Of a stretch of DNA of 64,000 nt, positions 45,105 through 60,912 are shown piece after piece. The first letter of the stretch is position 1. Every line of letters starts with the position of its first letter. The stretch lies in sequence record LR745206.1. One strand, given 5' to 3'. The notes beneath the pieces are model-generated. The model was given only the letters and a program-made list of their open reading frames with translations. It was not told the DNA's origin and ran no database searches. The position numbers were made by a program, and so were the translations under genes.

Positions 45105-45270
45105 TTTTACTTCTTTTGTATTTATATTTCTTTTTATTATTCTATTTTCTTTTTATTATTTATATAGTTCTGATGTACGAAGAAAATTTTTTTGAGCCTG
45201 TCGAAGACGTTTAAAAATTTTTCCAGACGATTTTCCTGGATGCCCACCACAGTCCTAATTTACTATAAAT

Positions 45271-46746
45271 CTAGACAGGCGCATCACCGTTCCTAATCCT
45301 AGACAACTCCGCTAGATACTCCGTATAAGCACTACTAGCATATATCCTACCATTATGATTAGGTCTCTGCTCAGCAGTTATCACCACCTCAACAGCCTCC
45401 ACCTCCACCGGTTCATCACTACACACATTAACCTCATTCACCTCAAAAGTATTCGGATTATATGTAGGTGATTCAACTTGAACTTGCTCATCAACGTTCT
45501 CCACATCCTCTACCATATCATCAACCTCTATACAAACCTCACGATCATTTTCATCATACCTACCGTGATAACAATACGTACCATCTGTATGACGATACTC
45601 ACGACCACGATTAGCATACATATGCTCTCTATTAAAGTCATTAGTCAATATACCATCGACAAAATAACACATCGTATCTATATAAGGATACCTATCATGA
45701 TCCACAAACTCCAACTTGATACGAAGCTTCGGTAAGATATCACCAGCCTCATTAATTATATCCATATCAGGATACATACTCTGCTCCTTCTTATGATACC
45801 AACCATTCTTATCAGCATACTGGATGAACAACTGAACATCAGAATCCTGATTAGTATAGATTCTATCTAAAAACTTAACCATCTTACCATCAACCATAAC
45901 ATCCCAAAGAATCGCACGTCCCTTAATCTTATCAGATAGATAAGAACCATCCTCAGATAATCTACCATTATCCGAATATAAAATAACTAAACTACATTGA
46001 TTGACATTCTTTGAATATATGTCAAAAAACTCTGATGGCTTCTGACACATACAAGAATTAGATAAGATACCTCCACCAGAAACATAATTCTCCTGCTTAT
46101 ACCAAAAAGATATATCCTTACCCTTAACTATACTGAATTGCTTATCGACATCCTGTATGAAATCATAAGATGCCTTATATAAATTTACAAACTCCTCAAT
46201 CTCCTTATCAATAAACTCCACCCCACAATCCTGTAAGATAGAACTAACCATTCGACCAACCTTAATAGAGTTTCTACTTTTACTCCATAACATCATATCC
46301 TTATCAGATACTTCCTTTAAACACGCCTTATTAATAACACATGAACGAGTATTACTCCAACTATCCTGAATATAACAATATATGTTCCCACTCTTCTCAC
46401 TGATCGTCTCACTTATGATAGTAATCTTCTCACCATAACTAGGTCTCCATCCACTACCACTTATATACTTGTTATAACCTAATCGAGTAAAGATAGAATC
46501 ATTCTTATCACTCTTAGTTAAAAACCTCTCACCATTAATAACATATTCATCCGGAATAGACTCCATTATTTTCTCCACCTTATCAGATGGTGTATAAGAT
46601 GCTAAGTTCTTCGTATCACTTATATCAATATAATTAAACTTGATATCCTTACAATACCTCTGTAAGTTTAATAATTGTTTCGAGATTTTGTTATGAGATA
46701 TACGCGATAATACGTTAGTAAACTGTTCAGATAATTTTAACACCAT
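45271..46746 (-). CDS. conserved phage-type protein (SCM...GRA.LW...DRIY) with acidic tail
   Basis: LSNSCM, IKGRAILWD, FLDRIYT; E/V/D-rich C-terminus. Confidence 0.7.
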   Translation of the reverse strand: MVLKLSEQFTNVLSRISHNKISKQLLNLQRYCKDIKFNYIDISDTKNLASYTPSDKVEKIMESIPDEYVINGERFLTKSDKNDSIFTRLGYNKYISGSGWRPSYGEKITIISETISEKSGNIYCYIQDSWSNTRSCVINKACLKEVSDKDMMLWSKSRNSIKVGRMVSSILQDCGVEFIDKEIEEFVNLYKASYDFIQDVDKQFSIVKGKDISFWYKQENYVSGGGILSNSCMCQKPSEFFDIYSKNVNQCSLVILYSDNGRLSEDGSYLSDKIKGRAILWDVMVDGKMVKFLDRIYTNQDSDVQLFIQYADKNGWYHKKEQSMYPDMDIINEAGDILPKLRIKLEFVDHDRYPYIDTMCYFVDGILTNDFNREHMYANRGREYRHTDGTYCYHGRYDENDREVCIEVDDMVEDVENVDEQVQVESPTYNPNTFEVNEVNVCSDEPVEVEAVEVVITAEQRPNHNGRIYASSAYTEYLAELSRIRNGDAPV

Positions 46747-55533: not shown

Positions 55534-55821
55534 ATGTATATGACTAAACAAACAATTTATAGAGTATCATTACTTATGTTAAGTACATTCGTATTATGGT
55601 ATATGGTTATATCCTTTATCGAATGGGATATGAGTTGGATTCAACATATAGTAGATGATAAACAAATGAGATATAGTTTCCTTGTTGGATTTATCATAAA
55701 GATATTACTAGACTTTTGGTTATGGTCATATATCAAAGATAAATATTTCCACACATACGTAGATGCTGATAAGAAACTTGAAGAAGAAAATCAAGAGAAA
55801 TTAAGGAAGACTTTTAATTAA
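55534..55821 (+). CDS. two-TM membrane protein
   Basis: two hydrophobic segments, charged C-tail. Confidence 0.65.
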   Translation: MYMTKQTIYRVSLLMLSTFVLWYMVISFIEWDMSWIQHIVDDKQMRYSFLVGFIIKILLDFWLWSYIKDKYFHTYVDADKKLEEENQEKLRKTFN

Positions 55822-56897
55822 GCTCTATAATATCCCACATCACCCATATGTAGATTCTTATATAAGTAATCATATATTCCATTAGCCTCTTCACTAGTCA
55901 TTGTTATATCAAGTGGTCTTATAACAACACTCAATAATACATTCTTCATATTCTCATTCATACCCAATCTCTTACTTACATGTATTGGTAAGTCTGAATA
56001 TAACCACTCACCTTTGATATTTATCTCTTCAATTATATTAGACTCTATAAGTGTTCTTATTCTATCACCTATTTGTTCTATATCAATATCATTGTCAACA
56101 GCAATTGACATATCTCTTATGATTGATGGTTGTGTAGATACCTCAACATAAGGTGATAAATCAGACATCTGCTTTTGTATCCTAGGGTTTTGACTTCTTA
56201 ATATTCTAATATCATTAATACCCTTTCTTAACATAACAGATCTATCTAACCCAATACCCATTGCTAGTCCTGACCAAACATTACTATCTAATCCAGAATC
56301 ATCTAATAACTTTGGTAGTGCTAGTCCACACTCTAATATTTCTAACCAAGTATCATTTACATAAACTTCTACCTCTATACCATCTTTTGTATAGTAGTGT
56401 GATGTTTCATTGTATCTCCATTTAACACCAGGTAATACTACATCAATAACACATTGAACCAAATCTAAAAGGTCTTCTCTATTATAAACTTTATCATTAG
56501 TTATTCTCCATATATCCATTTGATGAGGTTCACCAACATGTGTTTTATCAACAACATCCCTTCTATAAACAATACCAGGACATATCAATAATGTATCTTT
56601 ATTTACAGACTTCAATGCTGGTGGTATAGATGATGTCATTTGTGTTCTAAGTAATGTTGTATCGTTTATCCATCTGGTATACCTTGATGATTTTGTAATG
56701 GTATCTTGTGGGTAATAAAGATTATCATAGTTATTTTTAGAATCAACTATGGGTGAATCCTTAATGATACTTGGTTGTATAGTATATTTACTTTGTAATG
56801 ATTTAATGATTTCATCGGTTATAATACCAATTGCATGATTCTTATCTAATGTTAAGTCAACTACTTGTAATGATTTATTTAATTCTTCTTTATTCAT
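55818..56897 (-). CDS. single-chain PheRS-like ligase (PheS catalytic domain plus FDX-ACB)
   Basis: LLRTQMT, motif 2 YRRDVVDKTH...HQMD, WLEILECG, motif 3 GLAMGIGLDR, C-terminal PSIIRDMS...TMTSEEAN. Confidence 0.8.
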   Translation of the reverse strand: MNKEELNKSLQVVDLTLDKNHAIGIITDEIIKSLQSKYTIQPSIIKDSPIVDSKNNYDNLYYPQDTITKSSRYTRWINDTTLLRTQMTSSIPPALKSVNKDTLLICPGIVYRRDVVDKTHVGEPHQMDIWRITNDKVYNREDLLDLVQCVIDVVLPGVKWRYNETSHYYTKDGIEVEVYVNDTWLEILECGLALPKLLDDSGLDSNVWSGLAMGIGLDRSVMLRKGINDIRILRSQNPRIQKQMSDLSPYVEVSTQPSIIRDMSIAVDNDIDIEQIGDRIRTLIESNIIEEINIKGEWLYSDLPIHVSKRLGMNENMKNVLLSVVIRPLDITMTSEEANGIYDYLYKNLHMGDVGYYRA

Positions 56898-56920
56898 GAT
56901 TTCAATTTATTAATTTTTTA

Positions 56921-56956
56921 AAACAAAAAACCCTCAGATTTTTAAGTCTGAGGGTT
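56921..56956 (-). terminator. attenuator terminator (3:4 hairpin)
   Basis: AACCCTCAGA-CTTAAAAA-TCTGAGGGTT followed by TTTTGTTT, upstream of the PheRS-like ATG. Confidence 0.85.
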
Positions 56957-56979
56957 CAAAATATATAGCAATATCTTTC

Positions 56980-57030
56980 TCAGACCATTTTGTGGCTAAA
57001 AAAGAAATTAAATGTAGTATTCGTGTTCAT
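56980..57030 (-). CDS. Phe-rich leader peptide MNTNTTFNFFFSHKMV
   Basis: 4 Phe codons in a 5-codon stretch; GTCTGAG at its stop is complementary to the terminator arm CTCAGAC. Confidence 0.75.
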   Translation of the reverse strand: MNTNTTFNFFFSHKMV

Positions 57031-57063
57031 ATTAATTATATATAAATTTTACTCTTTGTTATA

Positions 57064-57071
57064 TAAAGATA
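57064..57071 (-). promoter_or_regulatory. -7 element variant driving the leader
   Basis: TATCTTTA 33 nt upstream of leader ATG; TTAG 20 nt further upstream. Confidence 0.45.
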
Positions 57072-59385: not shown

Positions 59386-59402
59386 ATAGGTATATATAAA
59401 AA

Positions 59403-59433
59403 AAAGGTGGTGAATTATAAACTCACCACCTTT
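59403..59433 (-). terminator. intrinsic terminator after SPFH gene
   Basis: AAAGGTGGTGA/TCACCACCTTT stem with U-tract on the minus strand. Confidence 0.8.
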
Positions 59434-59451
59434 CTCACCTATCTACTTATA

Positions 59452-60912
59452 TTATTTTTTATCTGATTTCTTATCATCTGAATCAGCTAATGGGTTTAAG
59501 TTCTTCAACATACCCAATAAGGCTTTACCCTCGTCAGTTTGTTTCAAAGACTCAAGTAGTCCATTAATTTGTGATCCTCCTTTAGATGATAGAATATCAG
59601 AGAACTTGTTCATACCTGATTCAACATCACCACTGTTAGCAAGAATCTTTAAGTCTGCTGATGCAAGTGCCTTAGCCATTGCTTCTGCTTTCGCAACTTC
59701 AACAACTTGCTCTTTATCCACCGTCTTAACTCTAATAAGGTAATCTTGGTACCCTACGTTCTCACCAATTTCTTTCGCTAACTCTGTTTGAGCAGTTACG
59801 GATGCTAACTGACCAGCTTTCTCAGCTTCAGCCTCAGACATACCTTTAGCAGCGATTACTTTCGCTTCAGCCTCACCAACGGCTTGAACACCCTCAGCTT
59901 CTTTTTTCTTAGCGGCTAAGTGTGCATCAGCATCAGTTTCAACCTTAAACTTATCAGCTTCTGCTCCAATAGCAACAGTTCTCTTACGTTTCTCAGCGTC
60001 AATGATTTCTCTCTCTTTATCAATCTCAGCTTGTTTAATTTGAGCTACTTTGATAACTTCCATTTGTTGTAGTTTAGTTGCTCTTTCAGCTTGAGCAATA
60101 TCAGAGATAGAGTTTTGTTCTGCGATACCCGATGCTTTCATAGAGTTCGCTCTAGCAATACCAATAGCTCTTTCAGAGTCAGCTTGTGCTTCACCAGCTT
60201 CCCTTTGTGTTTCAGATCTAGTAACAGCAATGTTCTTCTCTGCTTCAAGTTCTGCTTGTTCAGCCTTACGGTTGTTAAGTGCAACTTCTGTACGAGACTC
60301 CATATCAATTGCTGACATACGTTTCGCCATAATCTGGTGAATTACTTTTGAGCCACCAGCATCTCTTACATCCATTAACTCGATGTTTTTAATTGAAGCT
60401 ACACCCCAATTAGATAAGTCAGCGTTAACTGCCTCAGTGAATTGTAAACCAAAGATAGAACGCTCCTCCATAATCTCTTCTAACTTAGACTTGGCTAGGA
60501 TTGAACGAACGGCACCTTGAACTACATTCTCAAGTTGTTTCTTTAACTCTTGGTATGATTCCACTTTTGCTGCTGCAATGTTTGTATCTGAAATGTGGAA
60601 GAATGCTTTGACATCAACGACAAATGGAACTCTGTCTTTATCATAAGCTGAATATTCTGATAAGTCAATATCAAAATTGGATACTGGTAACTCCCGAACA
60701 TCAACACCAATAACTGGTATCCATTTTGGGAATTCGTAATAAACATTTGATGTTTTACCGACACCATATGAAACGGTTTGTTTGCCTCTTTGGACAATGT
60801 GAACCACGTTAGTAGGTACAATCCTACGTAGTGATAAAATGTAAAAAAATATGATAGCTCCTACTAATGAGGGAATACCATACAGTAATAATGAAAATAA
60901 TGTTTCTGACAT
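59452..60912 (-). CDS. SPFH/flotillin-family membrane protein
   Basis: N-terminal TM, RRIVPTNVVHIV, DKDRVPFVVD, GAVRSILAK, long A/E-rich coiled coil. Confidence 0.9.
   Translation of the reverse strand: MSETLFSLLLYGIPSLVGAIIFFYILSLRRIVPTNVVHIVQRGKQTVSYGVGKTSNVYYEFPKWIPVIGVDVRELPVSNFDIDLSEYSAYDKDRVPFVVDVKAFFHISDTNIAAAKVESYQELKKQLENVVQGAVRSILAKSKLEEIMEERSIFGLQFTEAVNADLSNWGVASIKNIELMDVRDAGGSKVIHQIMAKRMSAIDMESRTEVALNNRKAEQAELEAEKNIAVTRSETQREAGEAQADSERAIGIARANSMKASGIAEQNSISDIAQAERATKLQQMEVIKVAQIKQAEIDKEREIIDAEKRKRTVAIGAEADKFKVETDADAHLAAKKKEAEGVQAVGEAEAKVIAAKGMSEAEAEKAGQLASVTAQTELAKEIGENVGYQDYLIRVKTVDKEQVVEVAKAEAMAKALASADLKILANSGDVESGMNKFSDILSSKGGSQINGLLESLKQTDEGKALLGMLKNLNPLADSDDKKSDKK

Follow-up and report, generated by a model that had tools for sequence, protein, structure and literature searches.

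Leader region and predicted switch

The 64,000-nucleotide stretch of DNA analysed here (the window) is 100% identical to positions 558001-622000 of LR745206.1, a record of 634,780 bp described as 'uncultured phage', and carries, ahead of a gene for a single-chain PheS-like protein, a short phenylalanine (Phe)-rich open reading frame (ORF) and an intrinsic terminator. LR745206.1 belongs to the >630-kb megaphages of a Japanese subsurface sample; a SusC-like gene has been reported for it (PMC9723777). The GC content of the window is 29%, and a tRNA gene scan found no tRNA genes within these 64 kb. The features of the locus, listed in the order of transcription, are the following.

57056-57071, minus strand: promoter-like block TATCTTTATATAACAA, which includes TATCTTTA (57071-57064)
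57030-56980, minus strand: leader ORF of 16 codons plus UGA, encoding the peptide MNTNTTFNFFFSHKMV
56998-57012, minus strand: Phe codon cluster, leader codons 7-11 (UUU AAU UUC UUU UUU)
56993-57010, minus strand: segment 1, which forms the 5' side of the 1:2 hairpin, overlaps the Phe codons and is present in the minimum free energy (MFE) and centroid structures
56969-56987, minus strand: segment 2, which forms the 3' side of the 1:2 hairpin and the upstream strand of the antiterminator
56945-56952, minus strand: segment 3 core CUCAGACU, with segment 2 (antiterminator) or segment 4 (terminator) as alternative partners
56920-56957, minus strand: intrinsic terminator, with the stem GAACCCUCAGA/UCUGAGGGUUU at 56957-56928, then UUUGUUUU
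55818-56897, minus strand: single-chain PheS-like gene of the SrmL family, 359 amino acids (aa)
56873-56169, minus strand: class II catalytic core, aa 9-243
56138-55851, minus strand: FDX-ACB-type anticodon-binding domain, aa 254-349

The leader reads ATG AAC ACG AAT ACT ACA TTT AAT TTC TTT TTT AGC CAC AAA ATG GTC TGA, so that Phe is specified by codons 7, 9, 10 and 11. Its stop codon (UGA, 56982-56980) lies within the core of segment 2, GGUCUGAG at 56986-56979. The terminator consists of a GC-rich stem of 11 bp with an 8-nt loop (about -16 kcal/mol) and a U-tract at 56927-56920; the sequence right after the stem is UUUUUUGUUUU, and the stem ends 30 nt before the start codon of the gene. An independent terminator scan recovers the hairpin at 56957-56928, and the pattern CCCTCAG...CTGAGGG occurs a single time in the window, with 0 occurrences expected by chance. 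When the RNA of 57060-56898 is folded, the MFE and centroid structures coincide and consist of the 1:2 hairpin, which pairs the Phe-codon region with ...UGGUCUGAGAAAGAUAUU, and the 3:4 terminator. The fold energy is -34.3 kcal/mol compared to -19.4 ± 3.3 kcal/mol in shuffled sequences (z = -4.5), and none of 200 shuffles equals it. A first-pass annotation of this DNA had proposed a complete Phe leader-peptide attenuator, and its leader ORF, hairpins, terminator with U-tract and gene start were all recovered at the coordinates it had given, read on the minus strand; the folding check that it had suggested yields the two predicted hairpins, and the pairing that it had drawn between GTCTGAG of segment 2 and CTCAGAC of segment 3 is confirmed, extending to 8 bp once a stalled ribosome is modelled.

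The geometry of the switch was examined by constrained folding, with the ribosome footprint modelled as reaching 9 nt beyond the A-site codon. With the A-site at Phe codon 7, 9, 10 or 11 and RNA made as far as segment 3, the model yields an antiterminator of -12.1 kcal/mol, an 8-bp 2:3 helix of GGUCUGAG with CUCAGACU around a small inner hairpin. A ribosome on the UGA covers segment 2 in the same model; the best remaining structure then amounts to no more than -1.5 kcal/mol, and the terminator, at about -16 kcal/mol, is free to form. Sequence elements, mutually exclusive folds, footprint geometry, conservation and covariation are in this way established by computation, the last two from the homologous loci described below, and the element is very probably a functional Phe-sensing, leader-peptide transcription attenuator for which Phe-dependent read-through would be expected in vivo.

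In the proposed mechanism, transcription would begin upstream of 57030 and the 16-codon leader would be translated during synthesis of the RNA. With plentiful Phe-tRNAPhe, the ribosome would reach the UGA within segment 2 and mask this segment; segments 3 and 4 would then pair, and RNA polymerase would stop at the U-tract 56927-56920, ahead of the gene. With scarce Phe-tRNAPhe, the ribosome would halt at the UUU/UUC codons 7-11 and mask segment 1 instead, so that free GGUCUGAG could pair with CUCAGACU, the terminator would be blocked and the 359-aa gene would be transcribed. Without translation, the 1:2 and 3:4 hairpins would both form, resulting in termination. If the PheS-like product charges tRNAPhe, the circuit would exert negative feedback on the supply of Phe-tRNAPhe during infection, in the setting of an AT-rich (29% GC), UUU-rich phage. 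A link of the attenuator to host tRNA-targeting defence, which the first-pass annotation had also raised, is speculation.

Transcription initiation at the leader was approached through the promoter-like block at 57056-57071. This 16-nt block, TATCTTTATATAACAA, is 100% conserved with that of the closest homologous locus (L002, see below), and the upstream flank is about 45% identical. Its TATCTTTA resembles TAnnTTTG, with A replacing G; TAnnTTTG is the Bacteroidota -7 consensus. TATCTTTA was seen 191 times genome-wide compared to 128 expected, which is statistically not unusual, and the TAnnTTTG box by itself is not enriched genome-wide. Most other leaders of the phage have an exact TAnnTTTG box upstream, usually TATATTTGTA (76 copies vs 17 expected), and the two-part motif GGTAGA-N10-22-TAnnTTTG has 11 genomic copies compared to about 2 expected, at least five of them directly upstream of leaders for tRNA or aminoacyl-tRNA synthetase (aaRS) genes. 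Positions of the two-part motif in LR745206.1 are 342293, 364965, 387613, 390341 and 406616 (also 405466, 420050 and 522927). The Phe leader of the window is without the GGTAGA element. A sigma-70 scan was uninformative (99 matches vs 100 in shuffles). Since the window leader has TATCTTTA only, inside the block conserved with L002, its promoter is plausible but unproven: the promoter-like box noted earlier is present at 57071-57064 as part of a conserved 16-nt block, and its assignment as a promoter did not gain the same footing. The TAnnTTTG boxes fit the Bacteroidota -7 consensus and the SusC-like gene.

A second terminator of the window, with 17 bp at 59400-59436 (minus strand), directly follows a Band_7/flotillin-like gene (59452-60912). 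It is without a leader ORF and looks like an ordinary end-of-gene terminator.

Leaders upstream of homologues and elsewhere in the phage

Relatives of the PheS-like protein number 1,797 in a large protein collection and 440 in a genome collection, of which the best 80 are mostly from Actinomycetota, Alphaproteobacteria and Longimicrobia at 39-45% identity. A scan of IMG/VR with a single protein query returned no relatives, and an alignment query returned five. For the survey of homologues, approximately 170 loci were fetched and numbered L001 onward, and coordinates following such a number refer to that sequence. In low-GC, phage-like loci, a short Phe-rich ORF and a terminator are located directly upstream of the gene, as listed here with the identity of the encoded protein.

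L002: leader MNTNTTFNFFFNHFMV, protein identity 87%
L092/L175: leader MNKYFTYFFFTSFR, protein identity 63%, with RecA, NAMPT and a denV-like gene as neighbours
L004: leader MKNINNISFFFIGYPSIG, protein identity 59%, on a 777-kb contig
L094: leader MKNQNNIQFFSPI, protein identity 56%
L102: leader MNNLSFNFFSFFMGEKS, protein identity 46%
L162 and L151: leader ..FRFSFTSFFFRKKEG.. (..FRFSFTSFFF..), protein identity 47-48%
L007/L097 and L171: leaders ..FSFFMFDFF.. and ..FGSFMFGFF.., respectively, protein identity 48%

Except for close pairs, these leaders cannot be aligned with one another. In the closest pair, L002 differs from the window by the synonymous changes ACG to ACA and TTT to TTC, and by AAA to TTT, which gives a fifth Phe codon. 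The antiterminators covary: the window and three relatives each possess a pair of their own, namely UGAUCUGAG / CUCAGAUCA in L092, CAGUAUCGG / CCGAUACUG in L004 (whose sequence has a run of N, so that only letters readable in L004 itself are cited and none from its sister contig L005) and GAUUUGGG / CCCGAAUC in L094, and all four display the same modelled behaviour with the ribosome stalled or at the stop codon.

Leader codons also follow the content of the operon. In L003 (a 709-kb contig) and L006 (a 508-kb IMG/VR contig), the PheS-like gene is second in an operon after a HisRS-like gene, and this operon is preceded by a leader MKT(I/L)NINTHFHFHF... (L003:3194-3262, L006:1687-1755), in which His and Phe codons alternate, together with both terminator and antiterminator. 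The HisRS-like protein of these loci has 211-212 aa, covers no more of the catalytic core than its N-terminal part and scores 164 bits compared to a hisS cut-off of 287. In L117 and L121, 14 tRNA genes, for the most part tRNA-Asp and tRNA-Phe in alternation, form an array that leads up to the PheS-like gene, and a leader with alternating Phe and Asp codons, MFNFTDFNDFDFTDMK, is found ahead of this array (L117:1063-1113; identical in L121). As the phage of L117 uses Shine-Dalgarno sites and a TTGACA-type promoter, codon-matched leaders span more than one host group. Genes for tRNAPhe(GAA) flank the PheS-like gene in L008, L010, L117 and L149. About 20 alphaproteobacterial loci (Xanthobacteraceae-like, 57-66% GC) contain a conserved upstream ORF, ..(A/S)FRFT(S/D/N)FASFS.., followed by a terminator; this ..AFRFTSFASFS.. 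ORF looks like a bacterial Phe leader for SrmL. The ORF has 28-44 codons and a GC-rich terminator (L015:2253-2434; further examples are L027, L108, L111, L113, L118, L122, L141 and L144). What is kept is thus the architecture and not the sequence, in at least 10 distinct low-GC loci, two His/Phe leaders, one Phe/Asp leader and the approximately 20 alphaproteobacterial loci. The expectation that homologues retain Phe-rich leaders was borne out for low-GC phage-like and alphaproteobacterial loci, but not for L093, L096 and the actinobacterial loci.

Two candidates for further copies of the element were rejected. An exact-pattern search of IMG/VR for the platform of the window (GTCTGAG...CCCTCAGA...TCTGAGGG) returned two high-GC chance matches without a leader, and a blastn match of the window to LR756502 reflects terminator similarity only, without a PheS-like gene there. 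Synthetase-rich neighbourhoods surround the megaphage PheS-like gene (L003:799-1524, L004:908-2161, L093:715-2007, L096:1231-2496); the neighbouring synthetases include a 241-aa TrpRS-like protein and, directly upstream in L093 and L096, SerRS, and several are much shorter than cellular enzymes. At the two actinobacterial loci examined, no conserved informative neighbours were found.

Specificity against chance was assessed across the whole LR745206.1 genome, which was read in pieces and on both strands for hairpins. Small ATG-initiated ORFs with at least four Phe in six codons make up 0.3% of 11,355 in the phage, and among the 95 terminator-like hairpins of the 634-kb genome, such a Phe-cluster ORF precedes a single one, that of the window element; the gene behind it is the sole PheS-type gene of the phage. 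At the same threshold, Phe clusters precede 6 of the 10 terminators upstream of low-GC homologues and none of 73 other terminators from the same loci and the window. A chance origin of the leader-terminator arrangement in the window is excluded. Nearly all leaders begin with MKT, MNT or MTT and continue with codons rich in Asn or Ile (window 57030-57013; L184, L185, L186, L003 and L096), and at least three Asn in six codons are found for 5 of 10 target terminators vs 1 of 73 controls. These N-termini may provide an A-rich unstructured initiation region suiting Shine-Dalgarno-independent translation.

LR745206.1 contains 59 tRNA genes in total, including two for tRNAPhe(GAA), one of which is at 342635-342708 of the record. 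During the building of controls, further leaders came up outside the window; those ahead of tRNA clusters are located between 342380 and 407688 of the record. They are listed with their specificity and the tRNA genes downstream.

342380: leader MTTNSTHKNFSKSHKWFSNQSF.., His/Phe/Trp, ahead of tRNA His, Phe, His, Phe, Trp (L184:45380-45475)
343136: leader MKTKLKYKR, Lys, ahead of four tRNA-Lys (L184:46136-46165)
343630: leader ..SKSSSRSSS.., Ser/Arg, ahead of tRNA-Arg, Ser (L184:46630-46704)
365029: leader ..SYESYYEEG.., Glu/Tyr, ahead of tRNA Glu/Tyr (L185:18529-18615)
366081: leader ..ISIAVIGNGAGAI.., Ile(AUA)/Gly, with Ile as AUA, ahead of tRNA-Ile(UAU), Gly(UCC) (L185:19581-19664)
387700: leader MTTMNLNMTMNLTLNVVNITL.., Asn/Leu/Val/Thr, ahead of tRNA Asn, Leu, Val, Ile, Thr... 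(L185:41200-41316)
406703: leader ..APVNPQPQDQDP.., Pro/Asp/Gln, ahead of tRNA Pro, Asp (L186:10703-10798)
407638: leader MTTTQQIQQQQINQTD, Gln, ahead of three tRNA-Gln (L186:11638-11688)

When leader composition is scored against the identity of the downstream tRNAs for these eight clusters, none of the other pairings among the 40,320 permutations does as well as the real one. An intrinsic terminator was detected after seven of the eight leaders and none after the Lys leader; for those seven, the modelled antiterminator amounts to -12 to -34 kcal/mol with a stall in the codon cluster and to at most -2.5 kcal/mol at the stop codon. Two further leaders of the phage precede synthetase genes and follow the same stall-versus-stop folding behaviour in the model.

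L178:35802-35852, minus strand: Val leader MKTINLNNLVVVNVSV, ahead of a truncated 443-aa ValRS-like gene (L178:34378-35709)
L185:43875-43925: Asn/Arg leader MKTMTINNRNRLTDII, ahead of an AsnRS gene and a 392-aa ArgRS-like gene (L185:44022-45200 and 45220-46398)

The AsnRS scores 414 bits compared to a cut-off of 414, and 394 compared to 343 for TIGR00457. Leader codons match specificity wherever the latter is known, and the Phe leader is therefore a good argument for tRNAPhe and Phe as the partners of the window enzyme.

Related phages contain comparable units. The leader SRSRSSRS (codons CGT and TCN; L003:1832-1956) is found ahead of tRNA-Arg(GCG)/Ser(UGA)/Arg(UCG), the leader SSSRRSS (codons AGT and CGY; L096:4009-4118) ahead of tRNA-Ser(GCU)/Arg(ACG), and an Asn/Leu/Thr/Val leader with a 13-bp antiterminator ahead of a tRNA Asn/Leu/Val/Ile/Thr cluster in LR756502 (L001:3050-3235, minus strand). 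The LR756502 terminator that matches that of the window by blastn belongs to this tRNA-cluster attenuator. The tRNA leader of L003 ends in ...AUG GUG GUC UGA G and is followed by the terminator AAACCCUCAGA; it shares with the window element a common expression platform, ...AUGGUCUGAG / AACCCUCAGA, while the sensor codons differ, suggesting a modular chassis in which the sensor codons are exchanged. The tRNA arrays of these phages also contain tRNA-like genes with irregular loops in ARAGORN predictions (4-base 'ttaa', 'aaaa' and 'gtag'; 2-base 'ga') at L003:2105-2197, L149:288-363, L186:11364-11437 (LR745206.1 407364-407437) and L117:1885-1959. They may represent unusual tRNAs, of the frameshift type or another, or erroneous predictions.

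On this basis, the balance tips slightly towards the window element being one node of a controller that manages supply amino acid by amino acid, in which each tRNA cluster and each synthetase operon of LR745206 and its relatives would be gated by its own codon-matched leader. Translating ribosomes would measure which aminoacyl-tRNAs are limiting, and the phage would top up exactly those.

The PheS-like protein and competing explanations

The window protein combines a PheS-type catalytic core with a C-terminal anticodon-binding domain, as proposed from the translation: Pfam recovers the core (tRNA-synt_2d, 1e-33), FDX-ACB remains under its cut-off (26.2 vs 31.1 bits), and the C-terminal FDX-ACB-type domain is confirmed by a structural model and Foldseek. 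The AlphaFold2 model, built from a 40-sequence alignment, has a predicted local distance difference test (pLDDT) value of 93.4 and a predicted template modelling (pTM) score of 0.89. The relationship to mitochondrial phenylalanyl-tRNA synthetase (PheRS) was judged by curated hidden Markov model (HMM) cut-offs and structure comparison. The top Foldseek matches are closed-form structures of human mitochondrial PheRS (3CMQ, 5MGH, 8P8X), which cover both domains over about 380 columns at 18-20% identity with TMq values of 0.81-0.83; bacterial PheS alpha structures match no more than the catalytic core (TMq about 0.57). Searching PDB sequences with a profile likewise places mitochondrial PheRS best (2e-34), followed by bacterial PheS (3e-31). 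The HMMs assign the protein to NCBIfam NF051887, 'PheS-related mystery ligase SrmL' (423.4 bits vs a cut-off of 300, profile positions 9-349 of 349), and the cut-offs of TIGR00469 pheS_mito (137.3 vs 258.35 bits) and TIGR00468 pheS (112.6 vs 237.45 bits) are missed. The likeness to the mitochondrial enzyme proposed in the first-pass annotation therefore holds for the single-chain architecture but not for family membership. Within SrmL, which is widespread in bacteria and provides many Actinomycetota and Alphaproteobacteria with a second PheS-like gene, the phage proteins form a separate subgroup with 55-87% identity.

Human mitochondrial PheRS recognizes Phe through edge-to-face contacts of Phe232/Phe234 and anchors its amino group by His119/Ser121/Gln157/Glu159 (PMC5521548). 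When these residues are mapped onto the window protein through the PDB profile alignment, R112/R113 of motif 2, R219 of motif 3, Q126 (equivalent to Gln157) and A212 of the pocket are invariant in 40 homologues. The remaining pocket positions belong to the points considered next.

The probable reading of the locus is a ribosome-mediated attenuator in control of a monomeric PheRS-like enzyme of the phage, which most likely charges tRNAPhe with Phe; several observations weigh against this reading. At the level of the RNA, equilibrium favours the terminator over the antiterminator, the promoter is not established, the window leader has just four Phe codons and that of L094 just two, and the sole match of the element region in Rfam at a permissive threshold is His_leader (23.8 bits vs a gathering score of 49, E = 0.72), with an alignment that covers the entire Rfam model. 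Among the relatives, the SerRS and PheS-like operons of L093 and L096 are without a recognizable leader, and actinobacterial homologues are without a Phe leader in any frame and with any start codon. At the level of the protein, five of six Phe-holding residues are changed (H119 to Q86, S121 to T88, E159 to D128, F232 to H167 and F234 to Y169), with D128, H167 and Y169 invariant in all 40 family sequences, and the curated family name is 'mystery ligase'. Bacteria with the SrmL family also possess, to our knowledge, canonical PheST. Searched against Rfam at the gathering threshold, 40 related loci yielded tRNAs only, with no leader family and no T-box.

Since the terminator always wins at equilibrium, the window switch must be kinetic; the E. 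coli trp and other classical operons are likewise kinetic switches. The substituted pocket is still aromatic and its changes are conservative, yet it is non-canonical. Because the Phe-recognition residues are replaced, Phe as the substrate is deduced from regulation and genomic context and not from the pocket, so that the earlier argument from attenuator to substrate is upheld by the former and not by the residues. Genuine Phe-tRNAPhe synthetase activity of the window protein is accordingly rated as fairly probable and no higher, mainly because of this non-canonical pocket.

The strongest of the alternatives retains the sensing of Phe-tRNAPhe by the attenuator and assigns a role other than that of an ordinary PheRS to the SrmL enzyme, which might attach another aromatic residue or a Phe analogue to tRNAPhe, act as a stress- or inhibitor-insensitive PheRS, or transfer activated Phe to a non-tRNA acceptor. 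It draws on the exchange of the mitochondrial recognition residues for invariant H167, Y169 and D128 together with Q86 and T88, on the passing of the SrmL cut-off when those of pheS_mito and pheS failed, and on the presence of the family as an additional PheS-like gene across many Actinomycetota and Alphaproteobacteria. However, leader codons everywhere else in the phage agree with the specificities known for the synthetases or tRNAs behind them, tRNAPhe genes adjoin the gene in several phages, the protein is the sole PheS-type gene product of a phage with two tRNAPhe genes, and the aromatic pocket, catalytic arginines, anticodon-binding domain and overall fold of mitochondrial PheRS are all kept, which renders this alternative unlikely.

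A sensor of general translation trouble, such as slow ribosomes or ribosome-targeting toxins, would account for the small ORF if its Phe codons were merely T-rich sequence, and at 29% GC the codon UUU is common and a T-run encodes Phe in any frame. In the leaders of relatives, however, Phe codons are interspersed in frame with others (HFHFHF, FNFTDFNDFDF, FRFSFTSFFF, AFRFTSFASFS), which a T-run cannot explain; other leaders of the phage use different cognate codons (Q, K, S/R, E/Y, P/D/Q), and a Phe-cluster leader is present at no other terminator of the phage. A general sensor is thus regarded as very improbable. Least credible of all is a coincidence, in which the hairpin ends an upstream transcription unit, the gene has its own downstream promoter and the 16-codon ORF is untranslated: similar AACCCTCAG...CTGAGGGTTTTTTGTT terminators do occur elsewhere in related megaphages, the terminator is only 30 nt from the start codon and a sigma-70-like match overlaps the leader start (though such matches are no commoner than in shuffles), but the chance statistics (1 of 95 hairpins; 6 of 10 vs 0 of 73 terminators) and the comparative evidence oppose it, other copies of this terminator type themselves follow codon-matched leaders and antiterminators, and no room for a promoter exists between terminator and ATG.

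The attenuation reading is strengthened by the recurrence of Phe-rich leaders, terminators and covarying antiterminators and by leader codons that track operon content, and it offers a first functional handle on SrmL, whose expression is tied to Phe codons in three settings unrelated to one another, namely megaphages, other low-GC phage-like contigs and Alphaproteobacteria. The hypothesis of SrmL as a monomeric PheRS thereby becomes directly testable. A huge phage would have borrowed bacterial attenuation, which needs coupled transcription and translation, for the on-demand rather than constitutive expression of translation genes, and the presence of the same design at tRNA clusters and other synthetases suggests general codon-resolved feedback in the phage takeover of translation. 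Leader codons would also predict the specificity of downstream tRNAs and synthetases, also where these are truncated or divergent, as with the 212-aa HisRS-like, 443-aa ValRS-like and 392-aa ArgRS-like proteins. If the view of a supply controller is true, SrmL would be a true monomeric PheRS of bacteria and phages that is induced on shortage of Phe-tRNAPhe, and such an enzyme would bear on the origin of the monomeric mitochondrial PheRS.

Comparison with known systems

No publication on SrmL, on attenuators or leader-peptide control of phage aaRS genes, or on such control of tRNA genes and clusters emerged from a literature search of incomplete coverage; given this coverage, the result is absence of evidence only. 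Already known are the classical attenuation mechanism and the protein family, which is catalogued but uncharacterized. New are the megaphage setting, the translation components as targets, the functional clue for SrmL and the evidence for a genome-wide scheme of codon-matched attenuation.

The closest counterparts in regulation are E. coli pheST with its leader pheM and pheA with pheL (Rfam Phe_leader), which share a short Phe-rich ORF, 1:2, 2:3 and 3:4 hairpins and a terminator before a Phe-related gene; in pheST, the controlled gene also encodes PheRS. The window element differs from both in that there is no sequence relationship, in being phage-borne, in its promoter context, which is likely of the Bacteroidota type, and in its four Phe codons in 16, compared to 5/14 or 7/15 in pheM and pheL. 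In addition, its target is a monomeric SrmL-type enzyme, whereas PheST is heterotetrameric.

On the protein side, human mitochondrial PheRS (FARS2; 3CMQ, 3TUP) likewise joins a class II PheS-type core and a C-terminal ferredoxin-fold anticodon-binding domain in one chain. The window protein retains its Gln157 and the arginines of motifs 2 and 3; it is about 50 residues shorter and only 18-20% identical. As a full-length member of NF051887, it displays 39-48% identity to homologues of Actinomycetota, Alphaproteobacteria, Longimicrobia and others, in a family without an assigned function. We know of no mention of Phe-leader control, in phages or Alphaproteobacteria, in the description of this family.

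T-box riboswitches of Firmicutes and Actinomycetota also raise aaRS expression in response to the uncharged cognate tRNA through a choice between terminator and antiterminator. However, they bind the tRNA directly and need no translation, whereas the sensor in the window is a translating ribosome, and no T-box was found in the homologue loci. The trp, his, leu and thr leaders and the Bacteroid-trp motif use the same mechanism as the window element. In contrast to these leaders of biosynthesis operons, which act on biosynthetic enzymes, the phage leaders target aaRS genes and tRNA clusters.

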